Sequence record: PV231353.1
Reading direction: 5' to 3' (one strand)
Length of the DNA stretch: 64,000 nucleotides
A model generated the notes under the pieces. That model made no database searches. It worked only from the letters and a program-made list of their open reading frames with translations, and was not told where the DNA came from. The stretch's first letter is position 1; every line of letters starts with the position of its first letter. Position numbers and translations under genes: made by a program. Positions 4,985-62,510 of the stretch are shown piece by piece.

Positions 4985-5035
4985 CCTCGCGACACTACGC
5001 TTTGGGTTCTTGTATTGTCAACACATCACTTCAGG
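4985..5035 (-). promoter_or_regulatory. sigma70-type promoter (TTGACA-N18-TAGTGT), near-leaderless
   Basis: -35 at 5016-5021; no SD and no ACGACAAC leader before the ATG at 4983. Confidence 0.7.
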
Positions 5036-5499
5036 AGCTTGAGGGCCGGGGCGTGATATTTGAACCCCGCCTCGCTGATCGGCCCCACGCCCACGAAGGT
5101 GATGGTCGGCTTGCCGAACACCGTGCGGCCCGCGTCGAGGACGAGGGTCGCGCCGGCATGGTCGCGGAACCGCTCATAGAGGGCTTCCAACTCGGCGCTG
5201 GTCCCGGCGTGGAGCGCGATCTTCACGGCCGACTGCGAGTAGCGGTATTGCCGCGCGATCCTGGGGAACCGCTCCATGGCGTCCCACCACGCATGGAGGT
5301 AGGCGTGGCCGGCCTGAGCCGCGAGCTTGCCCAGGTTGAGGGATTTCTCGTCCGGCTTGCGGCGGTTCTTGGCCACGGTCATCGCGTCGAGCGCTTCCTG
5401 GCTCACGACGGCGTAGAGGCGCAGTTCGGCCTTAGGCTTGCCGGCGAAGACCGCCATCAGAGAGTCCCAGGCGTTGCGCCAAGCGTCGATCACGTTCAT
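5026..5499 (-). CDS. peptidyl-tRNA hydrolase type 2 (Pth2 family)
   Basis: GKLAAQAGHA, KIAL, DAGRT, TFVGVGP motifs. Confidence 0.8.
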   Translation of the reverse strand: MNVIDAWRNAWDSLMAVFAGKPKAELRLYAVVSQEALDAMTVAKNRRKPDEKSLNLGKLAAQAGHAYLHAWWDAMERFPRIARQYRYSQSAVKIALHAGTSAELEALYERFRDHAGATLVLDAGRTVFGKPTITFVGVGPISEAGFKYHAPALKLLK

Positions 5500-5939
5500 G
5501 AAAAGCGGCTTTCGTAGGAGGCCTCCAGGGCGATCGCCGCGTCGAAGGCGACGTCGATGAGGTCCTCGTGCATGAGAACATCGAAGGAGCGGTCGACCCG
5601 GAGGGCGAACTGGGCTTCCATCGAGCGGTTGAAGGCCAGGAGGTCCTTGTGGAGCCCCGCCATGCGGTCCAGGAGCTTGATCGCGTAGACGTCCGGCCCG
5701 AAGGTCCCCCGCGTCTGATGCAGGCGCTTCTTGACGTCGTTGATCGTCTCCCAGGACTTGACCTTCAAGTCCTCCATGAGGTCGGCCTGCTGCTCGACCC
5801 GGATCAGGTGACGCAGCAGCCGCCGGAGCCGGGCCTGGATTTGATCAGGCGGGGCCGACGGCGGAGGAGCGCGACACTCCTCCGCCTCGGTGGCGATCAT
5901 CTGACGCGCCCGGTTGACGCAGTCGAGGATCGAAGCCAT
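5496..5939 (-). CDS. hypothetical protein
   Basis: 147 aa, overlaps both neighbours. Confidence 0.7.
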   Translation of the reverse strand: MASILDCVNRARQMIATEAEECRAPPPSAPPDQIQARLRRLLRHLIRVEQQADLMEDLKVKSWETINDVKKRLHQTRGTFGPDVYAIKLLDRMAGLHKDLLAFNRSMEAQFALRVDRSFDVLMHEDLIDVAFDAAIALEASYESRFS

Positions 5940-6364
5940 CAGCCCTCGGCGGCCGGCGCTTCCGGCTCAGCGGTGGTCTTGCCCTTGCCCTTGCTCGCCG
6001 GCGCGGCCTGGGCTTCTTCCGCCGCCGGCTCGGCGATGGGCGCGGGGGCTTCCACCACCGGTTCGGCGTCCGCAGCCGCCTCGACCGGCGTGTAGTCGGC
6101 CTCGAACGCGGCCGGCTTCAGGATGGCGATCTCGTAGGTGTCCTCGCCGCGCGGGATGCGGACGATGTAGTCGTCCTGGGTCGCCGAGGCGATCTGGCCG
6201 TTGATCGGGACCAGGAGCTTGCCGACGGCGTCCTTGCCGACGTGCATGGTCCCCATGGCGGTGTAGCCCGAGTGCTGGGTCAGCCACGCCGGCAGGTCTT
6301 CCAGGCGCTGGAAGCTGTACTGGACGGCGTCCACGGTCACCGGTTGGCGGATATACTGGGTCAT
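5939..6364 (-). CDS. conserved phage hypothetical protein with Ala/Glu/Pro tail
   Basis: Y..QPVTVDAVQ ... DYIV ... KP..FEADY pattern common in phages. Confidence 0.75.
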   Translation of the reverse strand: MTQYIRQPVTVDAVQYSFQRLEDLPAWLTQHSGYTAMGTMHVGKDAVGKLLVPINGQIASATQDDYIVRIPRGEDTYEIAILKPAAFEADYTPVEAAADAEPVVEAPAPIAEPAAEEAQAAPASKGKGKTTAEPEAPAAEG

Positions 6365-6963
6365 GCGGTCTCCTGCTGGAGGTTAGCCGGCGCCGGAATG
6401 GCGTCGGAAAGGGCTTGCTCGACCAGGACCAGGATGTCCATGACGAGCTTGGGATTGAGGTCGGGCTCGGTGAGCGCGGCGGCCAGGGCGTTGATCCGGA
6501 ACCACGTCGGGTCGGCGTGCGGGATCAGATTGAGATTGTGCAGGTGCAGCAGCGTCGAGCCGTGGGAGGCGGTCCGCTCCGAAAGCTCGCGCAGCACGCG
6601 GGCGCCGGCGAGTTGGTCGGCCAGGACCTTGATCACGCTGCCCGAGGGAGCCAGGAGCAGGCGCATCCAGTCGCCGTTCGGATCGTCGGCTTGGCGCAGG
6701 TCCGGATGGTCCAGCGTCTTGCCCCAGATCACCTCGTGCGCCTTGGCGGCCAGCGAGCGGCGGCGGCGGGCGAGGTCTTCGGCGTCCTTGGCGGCGCGCA
6801 GGCTGGAAAGCGTCGTGGCGATCAACACCGAGGGAAAGAGCGCGACGACGAAGAACGCGGCGCGCTCAAGTGGCGAGGCGTGCGAAGCCACGATATTCAT
6901 GGCCGTGCCGATCAGCACCGTCGGATAGATCAAGCCGCCGTGGCGCTGGATGAACGAGATCAT
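6361..6963 (-). CDS. membrane protein
   Basis: Two N-terminal hydrophobic segments; directly behind a promoter cassette. Confidence 0.7.
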   Translation of the reverse strand: MISFIQRHGGLIYPTVLIGTAMNIVASHASPLERAAFFVVALFPSVLIATTLSSLRAAKDAEDLARRRRSLAAKAHEVIWGKTLDHPDLRQADDPNGDWMRLLLAPSGSVIKVLADQLAGARVLRELSERTASHGSTLLHLHNLNLIPHADPTWFRINALAAALTEPDLNPKLVMDILVLVEQALSDAIPAPANLQQETA

Positions 6964-7038
6964 GAAAAGGGCCTCCGGCGTTGTCGTCGAAGGCCCTTCT
7001 AGCGAGTCGGTGTCAGGCTGTCAACACATGTCAGCCAA
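6964..7038 (-). promoter_or_regulatory. promoter-leader cassette with dyad and U-tract
   Basis: TTGGC-N6-GTG-TTGACA(7019-7024)-N17-TAGAAG-GGCCTTCG-ACGACAACGC-CGGAGGCCC-TTTTC-ATG. Confidence 0.85.
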
Positions 7039-10134: not shown

Positions 10135-11369
<1,235 letters not shown>

Positions 11370-11371
11370 GG

Positions 11372-11440
11372 CGGGCTCCTTCTGTGGTGTCGTGATTTAC
11401 GACTTTTGACCATGCTCGTCGGGCGGTGTCAACACTTCTT
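11372..11440 (-). promoter_or_regulatory. promoter-leader cassette for rtcB
   Basis: GTG-TTGACA(11427-11432)-N17-TCAAAA ... ACGACACC ... AAGGAG-GTG. Confidence 0.7.
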
Positions 11441-11603
11441 CAACGGCGGTGATCTGAATTTGCAGCAGACTGGCCGCCGGGTGGTTGGGCGGCAGCAGCG
11501 CCTCGGCCTGTTTCATGGCGTCCAGTGTGTCTTCCAGCGCGGCGCGGAAGGTGTTGCGCTGCTCGGTGGCGGCGCGGACGGCGGAGGGAAATTCGAGGAT
11601 CAT
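11397..11603 (-). CDS. hypothetical protein
   Basis: 68 aa; 3' end overlaps the rtcB promoter. Confidence 0.55.
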   Translation of the reverse strand: MILEFPSAVRAATEQRNTFRAALEDTLDAMKQAEALLPPNHPAASLLQIQITAVEEVLTPPDEHGQKS

Positions 11604-13611: not shown

Positions 13612-13898
13612 CAGGCCGTGAGCCCCCGCTGCTTCAAGGCGACGATCTGCTCGATCTCCTTGAGGATGTGGTCGGACAGGCGGTCGGTCCGCTCCTTGAT
13701 GCCAGCCGGGACGCCGATCTTGCACTGACCGATCTCGTGCAGGCGGTCGGACACCGCCTTCAGATCGATCAGGGTGTCGCTGATCAGCACCTCGGCGAGG
13801 CCCACGGCCTCGGTCTGGATGGCGGCGATCCGCTGGGCGGTGGTCTGCGCCGATTGGCCCGAGACGAGGGCCAGGGCGGCGGTGTTCTTCTGGGTCAT
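13611..13898 (-). CDS. hypothetical protein
   Basis: Follows promoter cassette with AAGGAG SD. Confidence 0.8.
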   Translation of the reverse strand: MTQKNTAALALVSGQSAQTTAQRIAAIQTEAVGLAEVLISDTLIDLKAVSDRLHEIGQCKIGVPAGIKERTDRLSDHILKEIEQIVALKQRGLTA

Positions 13899-13965
13899 GG
13901 GGTCTCCTTCGTTGTCGTCGGGCGTGACTTCTAGTCAGGTTTCGTAGGGCTGTCAACACAATCGG
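13899..13965 (-). promoter_or_regulatory. promoter-leader cassette
   Basis: GTG-TTGACA(13951-13956)-N17-TAGAAG ... ACGACAACG-AAGGAG. Confidence 0.85.
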
Positions 13966-14221
13966 TCACGGGCGTCGCGCCATGGTGTGCGATCAGGACG
14001 AGACGGGCGCCGCAAGCCACCAGCGCGCCACGCGCGTCGTAGATCAGCCGGCCGGCCTCCTCGCCATTCTTGTCCAGGATGATCGCCTCCCTGGCGTAGA
14101 TCGGCTTGCCGCTCTTGCCGCGCTGGATGCGGATCGGAGGATCGTCGGTGCCGCGCTTGGTGTTGCGGTCGATCACCTGCCGGTTGATGTTGAGGACGCA
14201 GGTCTTGCGGGTGATCTTCAT
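13931..14221 (-). CDS. hypothetical protein
   Basis: 96 aa, coupled to upstream stop (TAATG). Confidence 0.7.
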   Translation of the reverse strand: MKITRKTCVLNINRQVIDRNTKRGTDDPPIRIQRGKSGKPIYAREAIILDKNGEEAGRLIYDARGALVACGARLVLIAHHGATPVTDCVDSPTKPD

Positions 14222-15642
14222 TAGATCAGGGCTCCTTGGCTGAGATCGACCGGCGTGTAGACGGCGCGGGTGATCGTGGTCTCCGGCTCGCCCGAACGCT
14301 TGTTGACGCCGTGGCGCTTGATCGTGGCGCGGATGGCGTAGCGCTTGCCGGCCTCGGGACGGTTCTTGCCGGTGTGGAAGTTCACCACCGCCGAGCCGTC
14401 GTCGCAGCGGATGGCCACGATGCAGGTCGTCTCGCCGAAGTCGTTGGTGTAGAGGGAGGTCCGGACGACCTCGCCCACGAAATCCAGGCGCTGGCCCTCG
14501 GCGGCGTCGAGGTGCTTGGCGGCCGGGCGCTGGGGAGCGTCGGCCTTCTTGCGGGCCTCTTCCTCGCGCTCCAGGGTGCGGCCGACCGACAGGCCGACAG
14601 CGGCGACGATCACACCCATGCGCTTGACCAGGACAAAGTCCTCCTGAGCGAGCACCATCTTGATGTTCTCGTGAAACGGATTGCCGGGCTTCAGCGAGCG
14701 AATGTAGGCGGTGAAGCCCTCGCGGTCGAACTCCGGCTCGAAGTCCTTGTAGGAGTCGATGATCTCCTGATTGCGCTTGTGCTCGTAGTCCGACAGGCCG
14801 TAGCCCCGGTTGCCGAACATCAGCAGACCGACGTGCTTGCGCGATTCTTCCTTGCTGTAGCCGCCGAACCGGCGGGCCACGCGGTAGGAGGTGCGCAGGA
14901 GTTCGCCCAGGTCGACGTACTCCTCGCCCTTGCGCCAGCCGCCCGGATCGCCCTTGAAGTTGTTCAGGTCATCCCAGAACGACAGCATCCGGACCGGGTC
15001 GGCGCCCAGGTAGGTCTTCAGGCACGAGGCCCCGATCATCTTGATCCCGTCGGCGGTCTCGCAGACGAAGGTATGCTTGCGCCGCTGGGCGACGCCGCAG
15101 TGGGCGCACTCGCCGGCGTGTACACGCATGGCTTCCACGACGTCGTTGGCGGTCTTGTCGACCAGCTTGAGGTAGTGGCCCGTCTTTTCGGCGGCCTCGT
15201 AGATGCCCAGCACGCGGCCCTTCTCGCCGACCATCGGCGGGACCGACAGGGTGATCTCGACGCGGCGGATCACCATGGCGTCCTCGCTCATATAGGGCGA
15301 GGGGAAGTCGACCACCTTGCGCTCCAGGACCGTCAGGGTCTGGCCAGCGTGGGCGGCGCGCTTTTGCAGCCGGCCCAGCAGGCGCATGAAGCGCTCCTCG
15401 ACGGCGAACCCCATCTTGAAGGTCAGGGTGGCTTGGCCCTCGCGCACGCCTTCCTGGGCGGCCCACATGGCGGCGCGGTGGGCTTCACGCTCCTTGTCGT
15501 CCTCGAAGATCGAGGCGCCCTTGGCGGTCACGACCTCGACGCCGTCGACCATCACGCTGGCCTGATCGGCGACCGTCTGCGGACGCTCGCCGTAGGTTTC
15601 CAGCATGTAGTCCTGGTAGCTGCCTTCGAACTCGCCAAACAT
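14221..15642 (-). CDS. large hypothetical protein with Cys/His cluster and possible C-terminal OB-fold
   Basis: CAHC...RKHTFVC...IGASCL; beta-rich C-terminus; own promoter. Confidence 0.8.
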   Translation of the reverse strand: MFGEFEGSYQDYMLETYGERPQTVADQASVMVDGVEVVTAKGASIFEDDKEREAHRAAMWAAQEGVREGQATLTFKMGFAVEERFMRLLGRLQKRAAHAGQTLTVLERKVVDFPSPYMSEDAMVIRRVEITLSVPPMVGEKGRVLGIYEAAEKTGHYLKLVDKTANDVVEAMRVHAGECAHCGVAQRRKHTFVCETADGIKMIGASCLKTYLGADPVRMLSFWDDLNNFKGDPGGWRKGEEYVDLGELLRTSYRVARRFGGYSKEESRKHVGLLMFGNRGYGLSDYEHKRNQEIIDSYKDFEPEFDREGFTAYIRSLKPGNPFHENIKMVLAQEDFVLVKRMGVIVAAVGLSVGRTLEREEEARKKADAPQRPAAKHLDAAEGQRLDFVGEVVRTSLYTNDFGETTCIVAIRCDDGSAVVNFHTGKNRPEAGKRYAIRATIKRHGVNKRSGEPETTITRAVYTPVDLSQGALI

Positions 15643-15714
15643 GTGCGGCTCCTCTCGCTGTCGTGAGGGAGCTTGTACGGGGCCACGGAGAGGCTGTCAA
15701 CACTCTAACGCCAA
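15643..15714 (-). promoter_or_regulatory. promoter-leader cassette
   Basis: TTGGC-N6-GTG-TTGACA(15695-15700)-N17-TACAAG-CTCCCTC-ACGACAGC-GAGAGGAG. Confidence 0.85.
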
Positions 15715-18582: not shown

Positions 18583-18941
18583 TGACCCGACACCTTCGCC
18601 AGTTGCTTTTCCAGTTCGGCGCGCAGTTCGGCGTCGCTCAGGCCCAGGCGTTCCTTCATGAAGGCCACCGCCTCGGCGGCGGTCTCGAAAGAGTGGGTCT
18701 CGGCATCGGTGCTGTCGCGCAGGCCGAGGATTTCGACCACGCCCCAGATCGTCGCCCAGGCGACGGCGATCAAGGCCGCCACCGTGATGGCGAAGCTGAA
18801 GTTGAACTGGCGTGCGCCACTCAGTTCCATCGCCTCGGCCGCCGTCCAGGCTACCGCGACCATGCTCACCGAGGCGAGATGGAGCAGGGCGGCCCTGCGG
18901 GTGTAGGTCGGGCGGACGGTCAGGGTCATCTTGTCTTGCAT
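18579..18941 (-). CDS. membrane protein
   Basis: Start MQDKMTL behind promoter cassette; two hydrophobic helices. Confidence 0.7.
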   Translation of the reverse strand: MQDKMTLTVRPTYTRRAALLHLASVSMVAVAWTAAEAMELSGARQFNFSFAITVAALIAVAWATIWGVVEILGLRDSTDAETHSFETAAEAVAFMKERLGLSDAELRAELEKQLAKVSGQ

Positions 18942-19015
18942 GAGGGTCTCCTCTGCGGTTGTCGTCGCCCGCCTCTTAGGACAAGGCCTCGGCCTTGTCA
19001 ACACATTCAAGCCAA
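18942..19015 (-). promoter_or_regulatory. promoter-leader cassette
   Basis: TTGGC-N6-GTG-TTGACA(18996-19001)-N17-TAAGAG ... ACGACAACC ... GAGGAG. Confidence 0.85.
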
Positions 19016-20726: not shown

Positions 20727-20896
20727 CGCAGTAGCTCCCCGTCGGCGATCCGGATGTCGGTCAGCGGATAGTCCTGGAAGAAGGCGCGCAGCCGCTGACG
20801 CAGCATGCCCTCGACGGCCTCTGCGTTGTTCAGGGCCTCGGCGAGGTCTTCGAACATCTGGCGCTCATGGGCGCGTAATGGGCGGGTCTTTGGCAT
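20723..20896 (-). CDS. small hypothetical protein (57 aa)
   Basis: Not in ORF track; MPKTRPLRAHERQMFEDL...; directly behind cassette with AGGAGG SD. Confidence 0.75.
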   Translation of the reverse strand: MPKTRPLRAHERQMFEDLAEALNNAEAVEGMLRQRLRAFFQDYPLTDIRIADGELLR

Positions 20897-20965
20897 GGGA
20901 CCTCCTGGTTGTCGTCGTGCGGCTTTTAGCCCCGATAGGTCAGGCTGTCAACACAGTGCAGCCAG
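20897..20965 (-). promoter_or_regulatory. promoter-leader cassette
   Basis: TGGC-N6-GTG-TTGACA(20946-20951)-N17-TAAAAG ... ACGACAACC-AGGAGG. Confidence 0.85.
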
Positions 20966-21772: not shown

Positions 21773-22787
21773 GGGCGGCCTCCTCGCCTTCTTCCTCGGC
21801 CGGCGCCAGGGTCGAGCCCGAGTATTCCTGGAGGTGATCGACCGCCTTCTGGGCCAGCGACGCGGCGGTGAAGATGAAGCGCTTGTCGCCCTTCAGGACC
21901 TTCAGCCACGAGGCGACGTAGGAGGCGTGATCCTCGCGGACCTCCGGGGTCAGGCCCAGCACCGCGCAGAGGAAGGCCGAGCCGAGTTCGGCGACCAGTT
22001 CCTCGGCGGCGTAGGCCTCGTCCCCGAAGCGCTTGCCGAACTCGCGGTTCAGGCGGTTCTCGCGACCGGTCCAGTGGACGAACTCGTGACCGAGGGTGGC
22101 GTAGTAGCTCTCCTCGTCGCGGAAGTCGTCGAACTGGGGCATCTGGATGAAGTCCAGGTGCGGCGAGAAGAAGGCCCGGTGCCCGCCGTGGCGCACCTCG
22201 GCGCCCGTGGCGGCGAAGAACTTCTCGACCGCCGCGTTACGCTCCAGGACCCGCTTGGCTTCCTCGGCGGGCGTCGCCGGGGCCGGAGCGGGCTTCTGGT
22301 AGAAGCGCTCGGGCAGGCCGTCGATCTGCTCGACGTTGAACACCAGATAGGACTTCAGGAACGGGATCATCCGCTCGACGTCCTTGCCGTTCGAGTCCTT
22401 CTCGGTCTTCTTGAACTTGGAGGCGTAGACGATCAGTTCGGATTTCTCGCCCTTGCGGACCTGACCGCCCAGGCCCCTGGCTTGGTTGTAGGTCATCCAG
22501 GTCGGGTTGGTGTAGCCGCGCTCCTGGGCGGCGGCCCACAGGAGGACCACGTTGATCCCGGTGTATCGCTGGCCCGTCACGCGGCGCGGATAGATCGCCA
22601 TGCCAGCCGAGGCGCCGCCGGGAGCCGACCACGGCTTCAACCAGGGACGCACGCCGGCGTCGAGCGCGGCGATGATCTTGTCGGTGATCTTGGCATACAA
22701 GTCGACCTTGACGGTCTCCGTCGAAGCTTTGCCGCTCTCCTTGGTGGAGCGCTTGGCCGGCTTCTTCTTGGCGGTGGTCTTGGTCAT
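21759..22787 (-). CDS. ardC: ArdC-family antirestriction / ssDNA-binding protein
   Basis: PW.KPW, YTGIN, WMTY.QA..LGGQVRKGEK, VFNVEQIDG, YYATL.HE..HWTG, Y..EELVAE. Confidence 0.9.
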   Translation of the reverse strand: MTKTTAKKKPAKRSTKESGKASTETVKVDLYAKITDKIIAALDAGVRPWLKPWSAPGGASAGMAIYPRRVTGQRYTGINVVLLWAAAQERGYTNPTWMTYNQARGLGGQVRKGEKSELIVYASKFKKTEKDSNGKDVERMIPFLKSYLVFNVEQIDGLPERFYQKPAPAPATPAEEAKRVLERNAAVEKFFAATGAEVRHGGHRAFFSPHLDFIQMPQFDDFRDEESYYATLGHEFVHWTGRENRLNREFGKRFGDEAYAAEELVAELGSAFLCAVLGLTPEVREDHASYVASWLKVLKGDKRFIFTAASLAQKAVDHLQEYSGSTLAPAEEEGEEAAHEAA

Positions 22788-22857
22788 CAGGGCCTCCTCG
22801 TTGTCGTCGAGGGGGTTCTAGCCGGCGACCGCGACCTTGTCAACACTCTCGCGCCAG
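22788..22857 (-). promoter_or_regulatory. promoter-leader cassette
   Basis: TGGCGCGAGAGTG-TTGACA(22838-22843)-N17-TAGAAC-CCCCTCG-ACGACAA-CGAGGAGG. Confidence 0.9.
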
Positions 22858-23983: not shown

Positions 23984-24237
23984 GACTTGAGGCTCTGGCA
24001 GGCGAACGTGATCACGTCGCCCAAGGTGTTGAAATCCTCAGGGAACTGAACCGGCTCGGGGACGGCGAAGTCCTCCTCCAGGCACATCATCAACTCGATG
24101 ATGTCCAGGCTGTCGAGGCCCAGATCATCTTCCAGCCGCAGGCCCTCGTCCATGTCGTCGAGGGTGTAGTGCCGATCGGTGATCGCGTGGGCGTAGTCGA
24201 AGGTCGCCGCCTTGATCTCGTCGCGCGTGAAGGTCAC
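23980..24237 (-). CDS. acyl carrier protein-like
   Basis: Acidic 85 aa; L.DDLGLDSLDIIELMM.LEEDF contains the phosphopantetheine Ser motif; T.GDVI helix IV. Confidence 0.85.
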   Translation of the reverse strand: MTFTRDEIKAATFDYAHAITDRHYTLDDMDEGLRLEDDLGLDSLDIIELMMCLEEDFAVPEPVQFPEDFNTLGDVITFACQSLKS

Positions 24238-27434: not shown

Positions 27435-27500
27435 CGGGTCCTTCCGTTGTCGTCACCCGCGACACTAGATGGTCGCGGGTGCGCGTGTCAACACTTCACG
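27435..27500 (-). promoter_or_regulatory. promoter-leader cassette (N18/TAGTGT subclass)
   Basis: GTG-TTGACA(27486-27491)-N18-TAGTGT; dyad ACCCGCGAC/GTCGCGGGT around the -10; ACGACAACG-GAAGGA. Confidence 0.8.
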
Positions 27501-38104: not shown

Positions 38105-38112
38105 GAGGACCC

Positions 38113-38983: not shown

Positions 38984-38984
38984 C

Positions 38985-42286: not shown

Positions 42287-42358
42287 CTGGCGCGAAAGTG
42301 TTGACAGCCTGAAGGGACTCCTCTACACCCACGCTCGATGACAACGAGAGGAGTTCCC
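42287..42358 (+). promoter_or_regulatory. promoter-leader cassette
   Basis: TGGC-N6-GTG-TTGACA(42301-42306)-N17-TACACC ... CTCG-ATGACAA-CGAG-AGGAG. Confidence 0.8.
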
Positions 42359-44116
42359 ATGGCCGAGACCATGACCCTGAGTTTCCGGATCGAAGGCGCC
42401 GCCCTGGTGGAGCGGGCGCGCGATCGCGTCATCGAAGGTAACTGGGAGCACGGCCTGCGCATCCTGGTCGAGGGCCTGCACGGCATGTCCTACGAACTCG
42501 CGATCGACATCCTGCTCGGCAAGCACACCCTGGGCGGCTGGTCCTCGGACCCCGAAGGCGTCTATCTCACCGACCAGGACCCGGAGGACGAGACTTTCAA
42601 GCGTTACAAGGAAACCCTCGACTACCAGTTCGCCGGCGTCTTCAAGCTGGAGGATGGCCGGATCATGCGTCCCTACGCCGTGGTCGACAGCTTCTCCAAG
42701 ATCGACTTCGACTCCAGGGTCCGCTTCCTGCGGCTGGCCCAGGGCTCTGACCCGGTGTTCTCGCGCCCCAAGCGCTATCACGACACCCGCGCCGAGATCA
42801 ACGGCGAGGAGATCGACTGGGCCTATCGCGCCCTGCACTACGCCGACGAGCCGACCCAGGACATCGTCCGTCTGGTCCGTATGGAGGGCTTCCATCCCAC
42901 GATCCGGGCGGCGGTCCTGTTCAAGGAAGTCCGCGACTATCCCAAGCTCCTGCTTCCGAAGGTCGAGACCGACGCCCAGAAGGCCGTCGATGTGGCGATC
43001 AAGGCCCAGCGCGGCCTCTCCAAGCGCGGGCACGTCTACGAGTATGGCGCTGGTCAGGACTTCGACAAGGAGCACTACAAGACCACCATGGGGATCGATC
43101 AGGTCCCCACCGCCTGGACCGTGCGCAATCCGAAGTACGTCGATCCCGACGCCAAGCTCGTCAAGGACACCCTGGCCGAGATCGACGCCCGCAAGGTCGC
43201 GCCGGCCTCCGATTACGCCGGCGCCATGAACCGTCTGATCAAGGACGAGGTGGACGGCGGCATGGACATCAGCACGGCCGTCGCCATGACCCAGGCCAAG
43301 ATGGCGCTGCTGGGCGGCATGGCCGAGGACCCCGAACAGCGCCTGCGGGCGATCAACGACGCCTACGCCGCCAAGTTCGAGAAGGCCGAGGGCCGCAGCG
43401 TCGAGGAGTACCGCAAGGCCATCATCACCCAGGCTGGCGATGACTTCTTCGATCTCGCGTACACGGATGTGGACGGCAAGGAGGTCGTCCTGAAGGTCCC
43501 GACCGCGCCGTTCGAGCAATGGGCTCTGTGGCGCACCGCCGGCGCCCATCTGGCCAAGCCCTGGAAGCGGGTGACCTACACCGGCTTCAAGACCTTCGGC
43601 GATGATCCCTACCACACCGACTGGGTGCTGGGCGCGGGGCTCAACCCCGAGGACTGGCCGGTCATCGAGGCCGACAATCCGCCGCTCCACAAGGCCGCCT
43701 GGGACAAGCGCTTCCGGGTCGCCGAGGAGAAGCTGGGCGGCAACATGCGCGTCCTGCTCGGCAAGGGCTTCGTGACCGGCAAGATCGTGATGCTCAAGCC
43801 GGGCGAGGCCCTGTCACCGGGCGAGATCGGTGTGATCCGCAACGCCGGCCCCGACTACGTCCAGGCCGCCCAGAGCGCGATCGAGCACAACACCGCCTTG
43901 ATCTGCGAGAACGGCGGCAGCGTCGCCCACCTCGTGGTCGAGTACCTGGACAAGCCCCTGCGCCTGACCCGGATCGAGAACGCGCGCAAGATTTTCAAGG
44001 ACGGCATGACCGTCTACCTCGACTTTGACAAGTCGACGCGAGAGATCGCCAAGGGCGGCCTGGGGCCGAGCCCTGCCGATCTTGGCCTCGACACGGAATG
44101 GGAGATTTTCGAATGA
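42359..44116 (+). CDS. large protein with C-terminal PEP-utilising enzyme mobile (phospho-His) domain
   Basis: G.VTGKIV ... GEIGVI....PDY ... ALICENGGSVAH ... FKDGMTVYLD. Confidence 0.75.
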   Translation: MAETMTLSFRIEGAALVERARDRVIEGNWEHGLRILVEGLHGMSYELAIDILLGKHTLGGWSSDPEGVYLTDQDPEDETFKRYKETLDYQFAGVFKLEDGRIMRPYAVVDSFSKIDFDSRVRFLRLAQGSDPVFSRPKRYHDTRAEINGEEIDWAYRALHYADEPTQDIVRLVRMEGFHPTIRAAVLFKEVRDYPKLLLPKVETDAQKAVDVAIKAQRGLSKRGHVYEYGAGQDFDKEHYKTTMGIDQVPTAWTVRNPKYVDPDAKLVKDTLAEIDARKVAPASDYAGAMNRLIKDEVDGGMDISTAVAMTQAKMALLGGMAEDPEQRLRAINDAYAAKFEKAEGRSVEEYRKAIITQAGDDFFDLAYTDVDGKEVVLKVPTAPFEQWALWRTAGAHLAKPWKRVTYTGFKTFGDDPYHTDWVLGAGLNPEDWPVIEADNPPLHKAAWDKRFRVAEEKLGGNMRVLLGKGFVTGKIVMLKPGEALSPGEIGVIRNAGPDYVQAAQSAIEHNTALICENGGSVAHLVVEYLDKPLRLTRIENARKIFKDGMTVYLDFDKSTREIAKGGLGPSPADLGLDTEWEIFE

Positions 44117-45696: not shown

Positions 45697-45929
45697 TCGA
45701 GCACGTCTGGCGCCGTGACCCGCGCGGTCCCGCCTATGGCTTCCAGCGCCTGGACCTGGACGAGGCGCTGAAGATCGTCGCGGTCGAGAAGCAGGACTTC
45801 CTCCTCCATCTGGTCGCGGTCCTGCACGAGAACAACCTCCTGCGCGACGATGACGTCATGGAACTGCTCGGCAAGGGCTGGGCGCTCGACCCTACGATCT
45901 CCACCACATCGACGAAGATTAGGCGTTGA
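45693..45929 (+). CDS. hypothetical protein
   Basis: 78 aa; stop lies inside the next -35 box. Confidence 0.65.
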   Translation: MIEHVWRRDPRGPAYGFQRLDLDEALKIVAVEKQDFLLHLVAVLHENNLLRDDDVMELLGKGWALDPTISTTSTKIRR

Positions 45930-45982
45930 CAACACTCTCGCGCCAACATAGAACCGCCCTCGACGACAACGAGGAGGCTTCC
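45926..45982 (+). promoter_or_regulatory. promoter-leader cassette, flipped-element type
   Basis: TTGACA-ACACTCTCGCGCCAACA-TAGAAC ... CCTCG-ACGACAA-CGAGGAGG. Confidence 0.9.
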
Positions 45983-46366
45983 ATGAAGCTCGCGACCCAA
46001 GACCGCTCCGACCCGCGCTTGAACGCGCCCTACCGCCTCGCCAAGGCGGTGTTCTACTACGGCGGCCCGCACGAGTACCCGATCCACCTGAACGACTGGT
46101 GGAACGAGGTGACGCCGGCCGACGTGGAGGATCGCATCTCCGATCTCTGCCGCGAGCTTTCCAAGCTGTCGGGCCAGACCCTGGCGCCGGCGACCTTCTA
46201 CGAGCGGATGAAGCTGGGCTTCGTCGACCTCCCGGAGGTCAAGGACGAGGACTTCGCCGCCCTGTCGGAAGCGACCCGCAACAACCTGCTGGCCATGCAG
46301 GACCGCTTCTCGGTCCACGGCAGCGGCTTCATGCTCTACTGGAACATCGTGAAAGAGGAGGCCTGA
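45983..46366 (+). CDS. hypothetical protein
   Basis: Start MKLATQDR behind SD. Confidence 0.8.
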   Translation: MKLATQDRSDPRLNAPYRLAKAVFYYGGPHEYPIHLNDWWNEVTPADVEDRISDLCRELSKLSGQTLAPATFYERMKLGFVDLPEVKDEDFAALSEATRNNLLAMQDRFSVHGSGFMLYWNIVKEEA

Positions 46367-47427: not shown

Positions 47428-47496
47428 CTGGCGTTCTTGTGTTGACAAGGCCGGAGCCGCTGGCCTAGAACGTCGTGGACGACAACAGGAGGGACC
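47428..47496 (+). promoter_or_regulatory. promoter-leader cassette
   Basis: TGGC-N6-GTG-TTGACA(47442-47447)-N17-TAGAAC ... ACGACAAC-AGGAGG. Confidence 0.9.
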
Positions 47497-47853
47497 ATGC
47501 CGCTCTACGACTTTCCGACCGGACCGACCACGATGGAGGACATCGAGGCGTTCGTCGCCGGCGCCCAGGCGGTGGTGACCGCCCAACTGGCCAAGGCCTT
47601 TCCCGGCGTGTCCGCGCCGGTCCTGGAGATCGCGCCGGTTCACCCGAGCAGCCAGTTCGCCAAGATCGTCGCGGTCGACGCCAGCCAGCGCTCGGCCTGG
47701 GCGTTCGTCCGACTGGAGAACGGCCTGATCTATAAGCCCTCGTCGTGGAAGGTGCCAGCCAAGCATGCGCGCGGCACGATCCATACCGCCGCGCACGGCG
47801 CCGAGTACGTCGACTGGACCGGCCCCCGCTATGTGAAGGACCTGCGTCGATGA
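47497..47853 (+). CDS. conserved phage hypothetical protein
   Basis: AKIV.....SAWAFV....G.IYKP.SWK.PAK..RG.I. Confidence 0.8.
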   Translation: MPLYDFPTGPTTMEDIEAFVAGAQAVVTAQLAKAFPGVSAPVLEIAPVHPSSQFAKIVAVDASQRSAWAFVRLENGLIYKPSSWKVPAKHARGTIHTAAHGAEYVDWTGPRYVKDLRR

Positions 47854-55232: not shown

Positions 55233-55303
55233 TTGGCGCGAGAACGTTGACAGCCTCGGCGTGGTGTCATAAAAGCCTCCTCGACGACAACGAGGAGGCC
55301 CCC
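55233..55303 (+). promoter_or_regulatory. promoter-leader cassette with perfect dyad
   Basis: TTGGC-N6-ACG-TTGACA(55247-55252)-N17-TAAAAG; GCCTCCTCG-ACGACAA-CGAGGAGGC (55275-55299). Confidence 0.9.
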
Positions 55304-55723
55304 ATGGCTTACGCAATTCCGGACCTGAGCACGTTCACGTTCCACGACCCCAAGGTCGAACGGTTCGCCAAGGCGATGATCTCGACGATCGAGACCGCCC
55401 AGACCATGCTCACGGCCTTCGCCAACGATCTCGCCGACAATCCTCTTCAGGCGTTCGAGCATAGCTACGGCGCCAAGATGGCCGCCGCCCACAGGGACGT
55501 CGCCAAGGGGCTGCTCAACGAAGTCCTCGACGCGCTGCTGCACGGTCAGGACAAGACCTGGGCCTACATCGGCCAGGACCTGCGCGAGCGGCTGATGTAC
55601 CGCGTGATCTACGCGGCCTCGAACCCGCCGCGCTCGACCAACGCCGAGAGCAACGACATGGCCCGCTTCGTCCTGCGCGCCGAGGCCGACATGCTCGACC
55701 GCATGACCAAGAGCCGCTTCTGA
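55304..55723 (+). CDS. hypothetical protein
   Basis: Start MAYAIPD behind SD. Confidence 0.8.
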   Translation: MAYAIPDLSTFTFHDPKVERFAKAMISTIETAQTMLTAFANDLADNPLQAFEHSYGAKMAAAHRDVAKGLLNEVLDALLHGQDKTWAYIGQDLRERLMYRVIYAASNPPRSTNAESNDMARFVLRAEADMLDRMTKSRF

Positions 55724-56255: not shown

Positions 56256-56333
56256 TTGGCGTTCAAGTGTTGCCAAAGCTGATCTGATCAGCTAGAACCC
56301 TCGCCGACGACAACGCAAGAGGAGCCCCGAGCC
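56256..56333 (+). promoter_or_regulatory. promoter-leader cassette with palindromic spacer
   Basis: TTGGC-N6-GTG-TTGCCA(56270-56275); AGCTGATC-T-GATCAGCT; TAGAAC ... ACGACAACG ... GAGGAG. Confidence 0.8.
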
Positions 56334-56714
56334 GTGGAACACCTGACCCGCGCCATCGACCCCCGCATCGGCTACCTGAACTCGGGCGTCTACTACGCCT
56401 TCGTCGACGGCTACGACAAGCCCGAGACGCGCGGCACGCTCGAAGAGGTCGAGATCGCCCTGGGCCTGCGCGCCGCGAAGCCGGCTCCGACCAAGCGCAT
56501 CGTCGCCGCCCAGCCGGCCGTCAGGACCTACTCGGTCCACATGCGGTTCGAATATCCGGGCTGGAGCTACGTCGACGGCATCACCTACGACGGTATGCTC
56601 GGCCGCACGAAGGCCGAAGCGATCCGCAACGCCCGCGCCGAGGCCTTTGCCGACGGTCACCTCGGCGTCGGCCAGGGTCGCGTGTGGTTCAAGGCCACGG
56701 AAGAGGACGCCTAG
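56334..56714 (+). CDS. hypothetical protein
   Basis: GTG start behind cassette. Confidence 0.75.
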   Translation: MEHLTRAIDPRIGYLNSGVYYAFVDGYDKPETRGTLEEVEIALGLRAAKPAPTKRIVAAQPAVRTYSVHMRFEYPGWSYVDGITYDGMLGRTKAEAIRNARAEAFADGHLGVGQGRVWFKATEEDA

Positions 56715-57267: not shown

Positions 57268-57283
57268 CCGCCGCCAGCCCCGC

Positions 57284-57330
57284 TGGCTTCAGTGTGTTGA
57301 CGGCGCGTCGATCGCCCGCTAAGAAGGGCT
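57284..57330 (+). promoter_or_regulatory. promoter (no ACGACAAC leader)
   Basis: TGGC-N6-GTG-TTGACG(57297-57302)-N17-TAAGAA. Confidence 0.8.
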
Positions 57331-57350
57331 GACGGTCACGCTCTGGCTGC

Positions 57351-59414
57351 ATGAATTTTCAATCCGAAAGGGGCCTTAAGTCCATGGATTTCCACGTCTT
57401 TAAGACGGCTGTCGCCAAGCAGTGGGCCGCGATGACCAAGGGTGACGCGACCTTGTTCCGCGTCGACGTCGACAAGGACCTCCTGTGGTCGACCTACCTG
57501 AAGGCGTTCCCGGCTGGGACCGATCCGATCTTCCGCGAGCGCTCCGAGCACGACTGCTCGTGCTGCCGCAACTTCATCCGAAACGCCGGCGACGCCGTGG
57601 CGGTGGTCAACGGCCAGATCGTCACGATCTGGGACTGGCCGATCGAGGGCGAGCCGGCCTATCAGCAGGTCTCCCAGACCCTGGCGGCGCTGGTCCGTTC
57701 GCGTCCGGTGCGCGACATCTTCCTGCATGACCAGAACAGAATCGGGACCGACAAGAACGTCGAGACCATGCTGGGCGGCGACGTCACCTGGAACCACTTC
57801 TTCGTCAATGTCCCCTCGCGCTTCGTCAAGAAGGGCAAGGACATCCCGACCGCGCTCCACCTCCCGCGCACGGCGCAGGAGACGCTCCTGCGCGCCGTCA
57901 ACGAGATCACCGACGAGGCGATCGACACGGTGCTGGACCTGATCGCCCAGAACGCGCTCTATCGCGGGGCCGAACACAAGTCGGCGGTGGTGGCGTTCCA
58001 GAAGGCCAAGAAGACCTTCGAGGGCCTGTCGGCCGCCGACAAGGCGCTGAAGGCCTGGGTCAACGTCGCCAGCGGCGAACTCTGGGGCTCGGTCTCGGGC
58101 ATCCGGAGCACGGTGATCGGCTCGCTGCTGGTCGACCTGTCGGCCGATGTCGACCTGGAGGAGGCGGTCAAGAAGTTCGAGGCCAAGGTCGCGCCGTACA
58201 ACTACAAGCGCACGACCGCCCTGGTGACCAAGAAGCAGATCGAGAACGCCAAGAAGACGATCTCCGACCTGGGCCTGACCTCGGCTCTGGAGCGGCGCTA
58301 CGCCGTCCTCAAGGACGTGTCGATCAACGACGTGCTGTTCGCCGACCGCGACGCCAAGTCGGTGATGAACGACGTCTTCGACGATCTGGCGGCCGACGTC
58401 GCCGAGAAGGCCAAGGCCTATGACAAGGTCGAGGAGGTGTCGATCGACAAGTTCCTGGCCGACATCCTCCCGAGGGTGACGAGCGTCGAGGCCCTGGTCG
58501 AGAACCGCCTGACGAGCAACTTCGTCAGCCTGATCGCGCCGGTCGACCCGACCGCTGGCTCCCTCTTCAAGTGGGGGAACAACTTCTCCTGGTCCTACGC
58601 CGGCGAGGTGGCGGACTCGATCAAGGCCCGCGTCAAGGCGGCCGGCGGCAACGTCACCGGCGATCTCTGCTGCCGTCTGGCGTGGTTCAACTACGACGAC
58701 CTGGACTTCCACATGCGGGAGCCGGGTGGCAGCACGATCTACTTCCGCCAGAAGTCCTCGCCCGTCACGGGCGGGCGGCTCGACGTCGACATGAACGCCG
58801 GCGGTGGTCAGACGCGCGAGCCGGTCGAGAACATCTTCTACGGCGACCGCCGGACGATGAAGGAGGGCGTTTACGAACTGATCGTCCATCAGTACAGCAA
58901 GCGCGAGACCCGCGACGTCGGCTTCGAGGTGGAAATCGACTACCTGGGCTCGGTCACCCGCTACGCCTACACGACGGCCGTCCGCCAGGATCAGTCCGTC
59001 ACGGTCGCCAAGTTCAAGTACAGCCACGCCGGCGGCATCGAGTTCATCTCCTCGCTCCCGGCCTCGTCGGCGAGCAAGGACGTCTGGGGCGTGAAGACCG
59101 AGACCTTCCGCAAGGTCAACGTCATCATGCTCTCGCCCAACCACTGGGAAGGCGAGCCGGGCGTGGGGAACAAGCACTGGTTCTTCATGCTGGACGGGGG
59201 CGTCAACGAAGACGGCGCTCGCGGCTTCTACAACGAGTTCCTGAAGGACAGCCTCACGCCCCACCGTCGCGTCTTCGAGATGCTGGGGTCCAAGCTGAAG
59301 CCCGCGCCGGCCGCCGACCAACTCAGCGGCCTGGGCTTCTCCTCGACCAAGCGCGACGAACTCGTCGTGCGCGTCAAGGGGGCCTTCACCCGTACCCTCA
59401 AGATCAAATTCTAA
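57351..59414 (+). CDS. large conserved phage protein with possible YfaP/DUF2135-like domain
   Basis: HDCSCCR.FI; W.N.DDLD.H..EP.G..IYF ... LDVDMNAG ... VENI.Y ... G.Y...V; start may be ATG 57384. Confidence 0.8.
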   Translation: MNFQSERGLKSMDFHVFKTAVAKQWAAMTKGDATLFRVDVDKDLLWSTYLKAFPAGTDPIFRERSEHDCSCCRNFIRNAGDAVAVVNGQIVTIWDWPIEGEPAYQQVSQTLAALVRSRPVRDIFLHDQNRIGTDKNVETMLGGDVTWNHFFVNVPSRFVKKGKDIPTALHLPRTAQETLLRAVNEITDEAIDTVLDLIAQNALYRGAEHKSAVVAFQKAKKTFEGLSAADKALKAWVNVASGELWGSVSGIRSTVIGSLLVDLSADVDLEEAVKKFEAKVAPYNYKRTTALVTKKQIENAKKTISDLGLTSALERRYAVLKDVSINDVLFADRDAKSVMNDVFDDLAADVAEKAKAYDKVEEVSIDKFLADILPRVTSVEALVENRLTSNFVSLIAPVDPTAGSLFKWGNNFSWSYAGEVADSIKARVKAAGGNVTGDLCCRLAWFNYDDLDFHMREPGGSTIYFRQKSSPVTGGRLDVDMNAGGGQTREPVENIFYGDRRTMKEGVYELIVHQYSKRETRDVGFEVEIDYLGSVTRYAYTTAVRQDQSVTVAKFKYSHAGGIEFISSLPASSASKDVWGVKTETFRKVNVIMLSPNHWEGEPGVGNKHWFFMLDGGVNEDGARGFYNEFLKDSLTPHRRVFEMLGSKLKPAPAADQLSGLGFSSTKRDELVVRVKGAFTRTLKIKF

Positions 59415-59850: not shown

Positions 59851-59876
59851 CCTTCGGGCGGCCGTGTCATAGGCGC

Positions 59877-59938
59877 TTGACAACACTCTCGCGCCAACAT
59901 AGAAGGGCCTCCGACGACAACGCCGGAGGCCCTTTTTC
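59877..59938 (+). promoter_or_regulatory. promoter-leader cassette, flipped-element type, dyad plus U-tract
   Basis: TTGACA-ACACTCTCGCGCCAACA-TAGAAG; GGGCCTCCG-ACGACAACGC-CGGAGGCCC-TTTTT. Confidence 0.9.
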
Positions 59939-60169
59939 GTGAAACAGACCGTCATCGAAAAGCTGGAGAAGACCCGCAACAGCATCATCGCGCAGCAGCA
60001 GCGCGGCATGAACTGGGGCACCAAGGCCTGCCTCGAACTGGTTTATCGATACAACGATCTGAAAGCGAAAGCGACCGAGGTCGGTGGTTACAGCAATCCC
60101 GAGTGGAAAGCCTATTGCGAGCGGCATGGATCGTGCGTCACGCATGATGGCTATGACCTGTGGGCCTGA
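59939..60169 (+). CDS. hypothetical protein
   Basis: GTG start behind cassette. Confidence 0.75.
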   Translation: MKQTVIEKLEKTRNSIIAQQQRGMNWGTKACLELVYRYNDLKAKATEVGGYSNPEWKAYCERHGSCVTHDGYDLWA

Positions 60170-60886: not shown

Positions 60887-61686
60887 GCGATTTTCAGCTT
60901 TCCGCCCAGCACCAGCGGATCGTCAACAACACGATCGACGCGCTGGACTATCTCTTTCGGCGCAATGGCGAGCCGTCCTCGGGCGGTGAGATGCCGTTCA
61001 ACCGCCTCGATCTCGGGAGCATCGCCGACAACATCTCGGCCGTCCTGGCGGTGCTCCCCAGCCACGCCGACATCCTGACGAAGTACCTCTTCATCGCCCA
61101 GGGGCTGCTTCGCGAGATCGCCAACCATCACGCGGCCAAGCCCGACGAACTGCGCCGGATGGCGCAGGCCCTGCGCCCCTTCTACAAAACCCGCGCCGCC
61201 GCCGGCCTGTCGCCGGCCGCCCAGCAGACCCTTGACTTCATGGTCGAAGGCCTGCGCTTCCTGGCCGAGAACGACTGCGAGCCTCCGTCGGGTGGCGAGC
61301 AGATGTACAACCGCATCTCGCTTCTGAGCCGCACCGGCTCGGACGCCAAGCGCCTGCGCCAGGAGGCCCCCAACCTCGACGTGGTGATCACCCAGGTCGA
61401 GGCCCTGTTCATCGACCTCTGGCATTATCGCGCCATCGCCCTGAAGGACGTCCAGGACGCCTTGGAGGCCCTGGAGCCCTACTATGTTCCGCCCGCCTGG
61501 ACGGTCGCGCCGGCCCCTGCGCCGGCTAAGCCCGCCGCCCGCATCGTCTCGAAGGCCGAGGCCCTGGAACTCCTCGACCACATCGCCACGACGGCCTCCG
61601 TCCTGCGGATGCAGATGGGGCCGGCCAATGCCGACATCACACTGGAGCGGGTCAAGACGCTCGAAGCCTTCGTCAATCAGCAATAG
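60883..61686 (+). CDS. hypothetical protein with internal tandem domain duplication
   Basis: EPSSGGEMPFNR and EPPSGGEQMYNR repeats. Confidence 0.75.
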   Translation: MSDFQLSAQHQRIVNNTIDALDYLFRRNGEPSSGGEMPFNRLDLGSIADNISAVLAVLPSHADILTKYLFIAQGLLREIANHHAAKPDELRRMAQALRPFYKTRAAAGLSPAAQQTLDFMVEGLRFLAENDCEPPSGGEQMYNRISLLSRTGSDAKRLRQEAPNLDVVITQVEALFIDLWHYRAIALKDVQDALEALEPYYVPPAWTVAPAPAPAKPAARIVSKAEALELLDHIATTASVLRMQMGPANADITLERVKTLEAFVNQQ

Positions 61687-61694
61687 GGGCCAGC

Positions 61695-62144
61695 ATGACC
61701 ACTCCGCTCTGCCTGAATCCGGACGGCGCCGACTTCCAGGCCCAGGCCGTCCTCGCCCTGGTCCGCTTCATCATCGGCGACGATTTCGAGCCGTCCTGGA
61801 ACGCCCAGAAGCAGGTCTTCGAGGGCGAGCCCCAGGTCGCCCGCTTCGATAGCCCGCGCTGCCACGGCTACGTGATCTGGCTGGTCGATCACCGCGCGGC
61901 GGTGTTCGGCGGCGAGGCCCGGCAGATCAACATCACCCTCTACCAACACGGGGTCAGCGACGAGATCGTCATCAACGCATGGCTGGGCGAGACCAACCGC
62001 TGGATGGTCCCGACCTATCACGACATGCCCAGCCTCGACCTGATGCTCAGGCACGTCACCTTCCGCTGCCTGGACGTCAAGTCGGCCGCCTACTACGTCG
62101 CCGACCTGATGAAGGAGTTCTGGGCCGAGGGCTCGCCGCGATGA
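61695..62144 (+). CDS. hypothetical protein
   Basis: 149 aa. Confidence 0.75.
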   Translation: MTTPLCLNPDGADFQAQAVLALVRFIIGDDFEPSWNAQKQVFEGEPQVARFDSPRCHGYVIWLVDHRAAVFGGEARQINITLYQHGVSDEIVINAWLGETNRWMVPTYHDMPSLDLMLRHVTFRCLDVKSAAYYVADLMKEFWAEGSPR

Positions 62145-62443
62145 GCGACCACGACGCCTGCCTGACCAACTGGGTCCTCTGCGACGCGCCCGGCGGCGGG
62201 CTGGTGGTGATCGGCGAAATCATGGCCGACAAGCGCGGGCGCTGGCCGGACGGGCGGCTCATCCACACCTCGCTCCTCCAGGTCAAGGCCGAGGCGGTGG
62301 CGCCGGGCGCGGTGGTCGCCACGCTCAACTCCCGCTACATCCTGGGGCGCAAGGCCGAGGAGATCACCGTCCGGCACTTCGTCGGGGCGATGCTCGCCCG
62401 CGTCGCGATCAGACCGCTTGACAACACTCTCGCGCCAACATAG
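62141..62443 (+). CDS. hypothetical protein
   Basis: G....DKRGRWPDG..IHTS ... TLNSRY.L; reads through the next promoter. Confidence 0.7.
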   Translation: MSDHDACLTNWVLCDAPGGGLVVIGEIMADKRGRWPDGRLIHTSLLQVKAEAVAPGAVVATLNSRYILGRKAEEITVRHFVGAMLARVAIRPLDNTLAPT

Positions 62444-62510
62444 AAGGGTCCTCGACGACAACGGCTGTCCGAAATTTGTAGACAGATTTCGGACATAGAG
62501 GAGCACCCCG
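62418..62510 (+). promoter_or_regulatory. promoter-leader cassette, flipped-element type, with inserted 30-bp palindrome
   Basis: TTGACA-ACACTCTCGCGCCAACA-TAGAAG ... ACGACAACG-GC-TGTCCGAAATTTGT-AG-ACAGATTTCGGACA-TAGAGGAG. Confidence 0.85.

Follow-up and report, generated by a model that had tools for sequence, protein, structure and literature searches.

A family of promoter-leader cassettes, probably serving early genes, in both gene arms of the phiCbK-like Caulobacter phage RBC57

The stretch of DNA analysed here, referred to as the window, comprises 64,000 nucleotides and is identical (100%) to bases 1-64000 of PV231353.1, the genome of Caulobacter phage RBC57. RBC57 is about 98% identical to phiCbK, a phage described as lytic (PMC10688885), and window positions 30000-40000 correspond to 153235-163511 of JX100813. 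About 130 small genes, mostly of unknown function, are arranged in two divergent arms which join near 36.95 kb. Both arms are punctuated by a repeated module consisting of a 13-nt word, a promoter, a core ACGACAAC shortly past the -10 box, a ribosome site and a start codon. Probably, all are copies of a single composite cassette for early-gene expression in phiCbK-like phages; the window holds about 20 of them and the whole genome about 25. The family is real, and it is apparently an undescribed variant of host-read early promoter cassettes of the promoter-early stem-loop (PeSL) type. A description of it was not found in literature searched by phage name, taxon and motif strings, other papers being possible; in the phiCbK genome paper the word 'promoter' occurs once, in an unrelated context.

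Simple counts over the window set the family apart from chance. The pattern TTGACR-N16-18-TARAAS has 11 matches against 0.01 expected, ACGACAAC has 15 against 1.4, and TGGC-N6-GTGTTGAC with at most one mismatch has 17 against 0.22. A repeat finder given no prior input recovers the cassettes independently. For the assignment of members, a hidden Markov model (HMM) was trained on 21 aligned copies and the whole 208-kb RBC57 genome was scanned with a cut-off of E<1e-4. The model reports 24 sites, 20 of them in the window, the weakest of the latter being 33315. Beyond the window, cassettes lie at 64.9, 66.2, 134.8, 195.2 and 196.2 kb, and the range in RBC57 is 1-73 kb plus 134.8 and 195-196 kb only. 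No further strong member was missed in the window, which contains one partial leftward promoter at 36970-36942. A motif check on whole genome and relatives had been proposed in the preliminary description of this DNA, and it bears the family out: CcrRogue, a phage of a different genus with about 78% DNA identity, carries at least 23 cassettes with the same words, 18 of which pair with RBC57 copies by their downstream gene.

The same description had listed 22 -35 boxes in the window, oriented with the local genes. A TTGACA-like hexamer is present at all 22 positions, and every one is co-oriented and lies directly upstream of an annotated coding sequence (CDS) start. Positions on the minus strand are the low coordinate of the -35 hexamer, so that 7019/7024, 22838/22843 and 33315/33320 denote the same sites. 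The repeated family stands, and its membership has to be narrowed: 57297 is only a partial copy, and 5016 and 11427 are marginal, having little in common with the family beyond GTGTTGACA. Neighbours are 1.0-7.8 kb apart, not 1.5-6 kb as claimed. In at least 10 copies the upstream word is inside the preceding CDS, and two cassettes are wholly inside the upstream gene. The stop codon of the preceding gene is the TGA within TTGACA in three copies and the TAG of the -10 box in three.

The hexamers had been likened to the Caulobacter housekeeping promoter, and comparison of both boxes with its consensus confirms the likeness. The consensus for Caulobacter RpoD (sigma-73) is TTGaCgS / GCtANAWC (Malakooti et al. 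1995, as cited in PMC8144410). TTG-C is invariant in the 21 aligned copies, 20 of which have TTGACA or TTGACG, and 4-7 of 7 positions match TTGACGS. The -10 region is (GC)TAGAAG with an invariant TA; 19 of 21 copies agree with GCtANAWC at 5-8 of its 8 positions. The last base of the -10 box is G or C in 19 of 21 copies, and -7T is present in only one. A hexamer spacer of 17 or 18 bp leaves 14-15 bp between the 7-mer and the 8-mer, within the accepted 10-19 bp. Judged by these bases, each cassette is a near-consensus promoter for the host RpoD holoenzyme. A missing -7T is the usual state in alpha-proteobacteria, where promoters of this kind are activated by CarD and in Rhodobacter depend on it; the Caulobacter homologue is CdnL (PMC7703639). 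Host polymerase, probably aided by CdnL, would fire the cassettes immediately on infection, and the cassettes would drive both divergent arms of small early genes. They share hexamers, spacing and a -10 box without -7T with Caulobacter RpoD promoters, and with alpha-proteobacterial rRNA promoters (PMC7703639) a G+C-rich discriminator and a start, predicted here, 8-9 nt from the -10 box. In contrast to typical host promoters, the phage cassettes are much closer to TTGACA and add the 13-nt word and ACGACAAC. An E. coli-type promoter scan found none of the cassettes because it demands a T at the end of the -10 box. A sigma-54 reading of the TGGC was also rejected: GG-N10-GC (TGGC-N7-TTGC) has 3 matches in the window against 2.05 expected, none at cassettes, and the cassette TTG is 2 nt too far from TGGC.

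Past the promoter, the core follows the -10 box at a distance of 7-8 nt in 36 of the 43 copies of RBC57 and CcrRogue. A strong GGAGG ribosome site and a start codon stand downstream, the distance from core to start codon being 10-19 nt, or 48 nt in one orthologous pair with a hairpin inserted in the leader. Because it is locked 7-8 nt past the -10 box and not fixed to the ribosome site, we take (G)ACGACAAC to be the start site or the initial transcribed bases, not a ribosome-site element. Every early mRNA would begin with (G)ACGACAAC. That the start region holds an element beyond the sigma70 consensus, as had been suggested, agrees with the retention of ACGACAAC between RBC57 and CcrRogue while flanks and spacer diverge. 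Possibly ACGACAAC acts in the RNA, as a common 5' end of early mRNAs through which a phage or host factor would control their stability, their translation or the timing of their decay. With transcription starting at or beside the first A, ACGACAAC would be the first 8 nt of every early mRNA; it is kept beside the -10 box even where a 35-nt hairpin stands between it and the Shine-Dalgarno (SD) sequence, and a related core GACGA(T/C)(C/A)A is found in the phage CcrColossus although the other words differ. The fixed 7-8 nt from the -10 box would, however, be equally expected of a start-site or escape element acting in the DNA, and Rfam gives no match at gathering score anywhere in the window. The leader of cassette 62418 contains, at 62465-62492 (plus strand), a perfect hairpin with a 13-bp stem (GTCCGAAATTTGT...ACAGATTTCGGAC) inserted between ACGACAAC and the SD sequence; Karma, CcrRogue and CcrBL10 have the hairpin too, with an altered loop.

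Many copies can form a hairpin in which the stretch from the -10 box to the start (e.g. CCTCCTCG) pairs with the SD region (CGAGGAGG) and ACGACAA falls in the loop. Five tested copies fold at -9.4 to -23.5 kcal/mol (z -3.1 to -6.3) and one copy does not fold. Among the 43 copies of RBC57 and CcrRogue, such an anti-SD:SD hairpin reaches -11 kcal/mol or lower in 10 and -7.5 kcal/mol or lower in 21. Only 7024 (-19.7 kcal/mol, U4) and 59877 (-23.5 kcal/mol, U5) resemble intrinsic terminators, with a G+C-rich stem and a U-run. The depositors of phiCbK annotated the orthologue of the 59877 hairpin as a terminator, and there the hairpin separates the start codon from a perfect -10 box. Transcripts of the cassette itself would start inside the hairpin and keep the ribosome site free, the 5' arm being upstream of the predicted start. 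Read-through RNA from upstream would carry the whole hairpin, and in the two copies with a U-run the read-through should terminate. Separate terminators as regular upstream partners of the cassettes were found only at 33346-33371, and their counts equal those of shuffled controls.

Aligned on the invariant TTGACA, the word in front of the promoter is conserved at -49 to -45 (YTGGC; 25 of 27 copies have G at -46) and at -39 to -36 (WGTG). As a 13-nt word, TGGCGYGAGAGTG, it abuts the near-palindromic TTGACAA. Between RBC57 and CcrRogue, identity is 80% in YTGGC, 83% in GTG and 99% in the -35 box, as compared to 58% in N6, 54% in the spacer and 39% upstream. TGGC and GTG are, on this evidence, selected positions, since they are conserved while the flanks diverge. 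The preliminary description was right in regarding TGGC-N6-GTG as an extra element, a conserved footprint for which the RpoD consensus gives no account; its placement upstream in every copy is true of most, but 45926, 59877 and 62418 carry the word inverted in the spacer instead. RBC57 has five exact copies of the 13-mer TGGCGCGAGAGTG, all of which adjoin TTGWCA: upstream of the -35 box at 22843 and 39177, and on the opposite strand within the -35/-10 spacer at the three inverted sites, which the HMM also matches in reverse. The word flips about TTGACAA, and the top-strand TTGACA is retained both in type A (word upstream) and in type B (word in the spacer). B-type spacers are nearly unchanged among paralogues and among RBC57, Karma, CcrRogue and CcrBL10, while A-type spacers diverge. 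The arrangement can also differ between orthologues, one phage having type A and the other type B (55247/Rogue 183465, 62418/Rogue 189203).

A direct contact with host polymerase, as an UP-like element or an extended -35 box which strengthens the promoters without a separate factor, is in our view an unlikely role for the word. The A-type word does span -49 to -36, a stretch occupied by sigma region 4 and the C-terminal domains of alpha, its register with the -35 box is fixed, and several copies have a T-run at about -57 to -50. The B-type word, however, lies inverted in the spacer at -28 to -16, where an UP element cannot act, and is kept there between paralogues and genera. Moreover, alpha-proteobacterial UP elements are A+T-rich and the contact residues of the alpha subunit are conserved (PMC7703639), whereas the word is G+C-rich, and the cassettes of CcrColossus do without it. 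The inverted 13-mer inside the spacer of three copies thus favours a bound protein over an UP-type contact, and a sequence-specific protein would best explain both arrangements. Such a putative word-binding protein could block or modulate polymerase from either position, as would fit an early shut-off or tuning factor. Near-consensus host promoters fire without a phage factor, and therefore the reader of the word is likelier a modulator or shut-off factor than a promoter activator. We tentatively propose that the 13-nt word might be the operator of one factor (a phage early, virion or host protein) for the whole early regulon, that the flip of the word might sort promoters into two control classes, that the hairpins might be insulators within the promoters that halt or silence read-through RNA and let transcripts begun inside them escape, and that ACGACAAC might mark early mRNAs for joint control.

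Related phages show how the cassettes are kept and exchanged. In the 50 kb examined of CcrColossus the same layout is built from other words, CTTGAC...TTTCTTTACAAG or AGAGTTGACAG with the core GACGATCA, and the cores are often flanked by CCTCC...GGAGG in an anti-SD/loop/SD layout; the TGGC word and ACGACAAC were not found there. Synteny breaks fall at cassettes in about 10 of about 45 cases against CcrRogue and in 1 of 6 against phiCbK, and one gene has moved between cassettes. Like the PeSLs of T4-type phages, the cassettes may in addition be points at which genes are exchanged and shuffled. PeSL cassettes are the closest known kind. They are repeated early promoters of sigma-70 consensus with an overlapping stem-loop terminator, extending from stop codon to SD sequence and start codon (PMC2839356, PMC4122927), and they concentrate among small unknown genes and act as recombination joints (Arbiol, Comeau & Krisch 2010, PMC2839356; Comeau et al. 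2014, PMC4122927). Common to both systems are many copies of an early promoter with the host sigma-70 consensus ending in an SD sequence and start codon, and the location in regions dense with small genes of unknown function. A stem-loop overlapping the promoter is a possible further likeness, seen here in a subset of copies; that of PeSLs terminates or attenuates upstream transcription and in one subclass lies just past the -10 box, as here. Indel and replacement junctions between related phages at cassettes are another possible likeness, in RBC57 only suggested. The two are unrelated in sequence, and the phages here have an alpha-proteobacterial host of high G+C content. The A+T-rich upstream region of PeSLs is replaced by a G+C-rich word at -49 to -36 which is invertible into the spacer, and upstream of the word there is only a weak T excess at -55 to -52. 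Here, too, the initial transcribed sequence is conserved, and the stem is formed by anti-SD and SD and is strong only in a minority of copies.

Other repeated phage elements are less similar. The start-associated sequences of cluster K mycobacteriophages are short conserved sequences just upstream of many start codons, which include or adjoin the ribosome site; in contrast, ACGACAAC is locked to the -10 box, not to the start codon. In the stoperators of cluster A mycobacteriophages (L5 gp71) and the early-promoter inverted repeats of phiC31, a word of 13-17 bp in 20-30 intergenic copies is the binding site of a single phage repressor, through which many transcription units are controlled. Cluster A mycobacteriophages and phiC31 are temperate and their repressors are known. 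A short word repeated across a phage genome is shared with these systems, but the phiCbK-like phage is described as lytic (PMC10688885), and its word always abuts the -35 box.

Some findings weigh against the composite cassette with a bound word and an insulating hairpin. The hairpin is weak or absent in about half of the copies. Pairing between arms of the same copy is only modestly better than cross-pairing (-8.47 vs -7.84 kcal/mol, 57 of 2000 permutations as good), in an arm-swap test inflated by orthologues; as the arm-pairing signal among paralogues is weak, the hairpin is treated as a feature of a subset, not a defining one. The enrichment of synteny breaks at cassettes does not exceed the expectation for gene boundaries, 25 of about 130 junctions carrying a cassette; it is real relative to sequence length, not to gene boundaries. 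The three B-type copies of the window share 49 nt at 86-100% identity, and the conservation of type B could partly reflect recent copying or gene conversion. Finally, the exact 19-mer TGGCGCGAGAGTGTTGACA has 4 matches in 185,579 genomes, none of them in a Caulobacter chromosome, which makes a host factor with many such sites less likely.

Taken further, copying alone might account for the shared words: the cassettes would be copied recombination linkers, kept alike by common descent and concerted evolution, and the word would have no binding function. The near-identity of the B-type copies over 49 nt fits such a view, as does the cassette 7024/136269, which is identical between RBC57 and CcrRogue over about 90 nt in genomes about 78% alike. 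Cassette types are also swapped at orthologous genes, genes move between cassettes, and PeSLs behave likewise (PMC2839356). We nevertheless consider linkers without a binding function improbable. Among A-type copies the spacer and N6 vary freely, but 20-25 of 27 copies retain TGGC and GTG, which argues for position-specific selection and not for uniform copying, and the word is retained even where it overlaps the upstream CDS.

In IMG/VR the exact 19-mer is found only in phiCbK-like genomes and 4 stray contigs. Altogether, 6 contigs that do not belong to the phiCbK group contain TGGCGCGAGAGTGTTGACA, among them IMG/VR fragments, one contig from Shimia and one of 210 kb from a Brevundimonas metagenome-assembled genome, and a seventh contains a one-base variant (TGGCGTG...); additional TTGAC sites are often near. 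By tblastx the stray contigs match the phage mainly through compositional noise, and only the 210-kb Brevundimonas contig looks distantly related. The counts are near chance and no wider family is claimed; the recurrence of the same variant in 6 of 7 contigs is poorly explained by chance.

The preliminary description had ascribed the extra elements to a phage-specific regulon read by a regulator from the window, with the GcrA-like protein, the XRE protein (TgrL) and the winged helix-turn-helix (wHTH) proteins as candidates. We give this little credence, even though the elements are real footprints. The 26 Caulobacter phage records with the full cassette are exactly those that have the GcrA-like gene, which is missing from CcrColossus and CcrPW, both without the word and ACGACAAC, and GcrA rides sigma-70 to nearly all housekeeping promoters (PMC4647560). 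This phyletic match is, however, confounded by shared ancestry, and early promoters must fire before any phage protein exists. The three candidates fared no better individually. With the published chromatin immunoprecipitation sequencing matrix of TgrL (PMC10688885, S2 Table), the best score per cassette is 2.6-10.3 of 18.1 at no fixed position, which is background; 140 genome sites score >9, and the top genomic matches lie outside the cassettes. The recognition element of GcrA is a promoter-proximal methylated GANTC, best YGAKTCK (PMC4647560), and no positioned GANTC marks the cassettes: 28 cassettes of 100 nt (2800 nt) contain 6 against 3.7 expected, at scattered positions. As to the wHTH proteins, the TrmB-like gp268 of phiCbK (JX100813 179251-179634) is present in CcrRogue and absent from RBC57, where its site is at 56023-56043 of the window and all cassettes are kept; the remaining wHTH gene is at 20382-20726. 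The box TTAA-N7-TTAA of CtrA is in no cassette.

By RNA sequencing, tgrL is early and highly expressed at 15 min, and about 41% of phiCbK genes are early (PMC10688885). In the operon headed by cassette 33320, tgrL (31624-32001) comes third, and no further promoter-like site intervenes. The early timing of the cassettes is taken from the text of PMC10688885 and from tgrL only. Another family of promoter-like sequences, TGTCGTGAATCTTGAC(A), is marked by a CcrM site (GANTC, as GAATC or GATTC) directly next to its -35 box. Its 19 copies lie at 76716-197626 of RBC57 before structural, tRNA and replication genes, none of them in the window, and six copies continue with TTAACCA. This family is a better candidate target of the phage GcrA-like protein than the cassettes are. 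The cassettes being chiefly at 1-73 kb and the TGTCGTGAATCTTGAC(A) family at 76.7-197.6 kb, the two families divide the genome.

phiCbK is the standard phage of the Caulobacter cell-cycle field, and its promoters are not described in the literature that could be searched. Together, the cassettes and the GANTC family provide a first map of phiCbK transcription units and a testable division into early and later ones. The cassettes are strong, compact, host-read promoter-leader parts for a high-G+C alpha-proteobacterium, and the inverted-word variants are a natural experiment on a site acting on either side of the -35 box. Should the hairpins insulate as proposed, they would show how a phage prevents read-through from building up along two long arms of about 130 small genes. 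Given the parallel to the PeSLs of T4-type phages, large lytic phages may generally resort to promoter-terminator cassettes as joints for shuffling. Overall the family is of moderate interest, and its inverted word and the hairpins embedded in its promoters deserve experiments.

Table 1. Cassettes and associated features in the window (HMM, cassette hidden Markov model)
Position	Strand	Feature	Evidence
4981..5035	-	marginal member; GTGTTGACA-N18-TAGTGT, ATG 8 nt past -10	HMM E 3.1
6961..7038	-	full A-type; TTGGC-N6-GTG, TTGACA, N17, TAGAAG, ACGACAAC, GGAGG, ATG at 6963	HMM E 1e-12
6961..7038	-	terminator-like hairpin and T-run in cassette 7019	-19.7 kcal/mol, z -4.6
11367..11446	-	marginal member; GTGTTGACA, poor -10, core ACGACACC	HMM E 1.4
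13896..13970	-	full cassette, GTG kept, TGGC degenerate, no hairpin; upstream stop is TAG of -10 box	HMM, fold
15640..15714	-	full A-type, core ACGACAGC	HMM; hairpin -13.3 kcal/mol
18939..19015	-	full A-type	HMM
20894..20965	-	full A-type; upstream stop is TGA within TTGACA	HMM
22785..22857	-	full A-type, exact 13-mer TGGCGCGAGAGTG; upstream stop is TAG of -10 box	HMM
24235..24307	-	A-type, TTGACG, core ACGACACC, wholly within upstream CDS	HMM
27432..27505	-	subclass with N18 spacer, -10 TAGTGT, ACGACAAC present, no TGGC	HMM E 3e-6
28937..29011	-	full A-type, best HMM match; upstream stop is TGA of -35	HMM E 5e-13
33258..33334	-	A-type, variant core CGACACAACGACAG (ACGACAG, 13 nt past -10); heads tgrL operon	HMM E 2e-5
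33346-33371	-	strong terminator-like hairpin, 11 pairs then T-run, between 707-aa gene 33397-35520 and cassette 33320	
36916..36970	-	partial B-like leftward promoter TTGTCA-N17-TAGGGT, no ACGACAAC; precedes first minus-arm gene and GcrA-like gene	by eye
36951-36972	+	duplicate of 3' part of word and TTGACA (TTCGAGTGTTGACAAG), 30 nt upstream of cassette 36995	
36981..37056	+	first A-type of plus arm	HMM
39163..39238	+	A-type, exact 13-mer, core ACGACAGC, wholly within upstream CDS	HMM
42287..42361	+	A-type, core ATGACAAC	HMM
45912..45985	+	B-type; TGGCGCGAGAGTG on opposite strand at 45933-45945 in spacer; upstream stop is TGA of -35	HMM
47428..47499	+	A-type, N18 spacer	HMM
55233..55306	+	A-type, perfect 9-bp anti-SD:SD hairpin; CcrRogue orthologue is B-type	-17.5 kcal/mol, z -6.3
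56256..56336	+	A-type, -35 TTGCCA	HMM
57283..57386	+	partial member; TGGC-N6-GTG, TTGACG, N17, TAAGAA, no ACGACAAC, long leader	HMM E 0.012
59863..59941	+	B-type, inverted 13-mer at 59884-59896; terminator-like hairpin and T5	-23.5 kcal/mol, z -5.0
62404..62513	+	B-type, inverted 13-mer at 62425-62437; extra leader hairpin with 13-bp stem between core and SD	

The individual sites are collected in Table 1. Where the two arms meet, TTCGAGTGTTGACAAG read on the opposite strand provides the leftward promoter of the minus arm with its -35 box. At the marginal site 5016 the ATG belongs to a DEDD-exonuclease-like gene (MTETITYAVFDIETGGLG...), and the mRNA is probably leaderless, because this ATG is only 8 nt past the -10 box. 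Unannotated gaps without a cassette are present on the plus strand at 53503-54039 (537 nt) and 41550-41913 (364 nt), the former being absent from phiCbK. On the minus strand of RBC57, the annotation divides an RtcB-like RNA ligase between the CDSs 10135-10599 and 10722-11369, which are 122 nt apart. In CcrRogue the RtcB-like RNA ligase is a single gene of 1233 nt, and the RBC57 gene may be split, frameshifted or interrupted.

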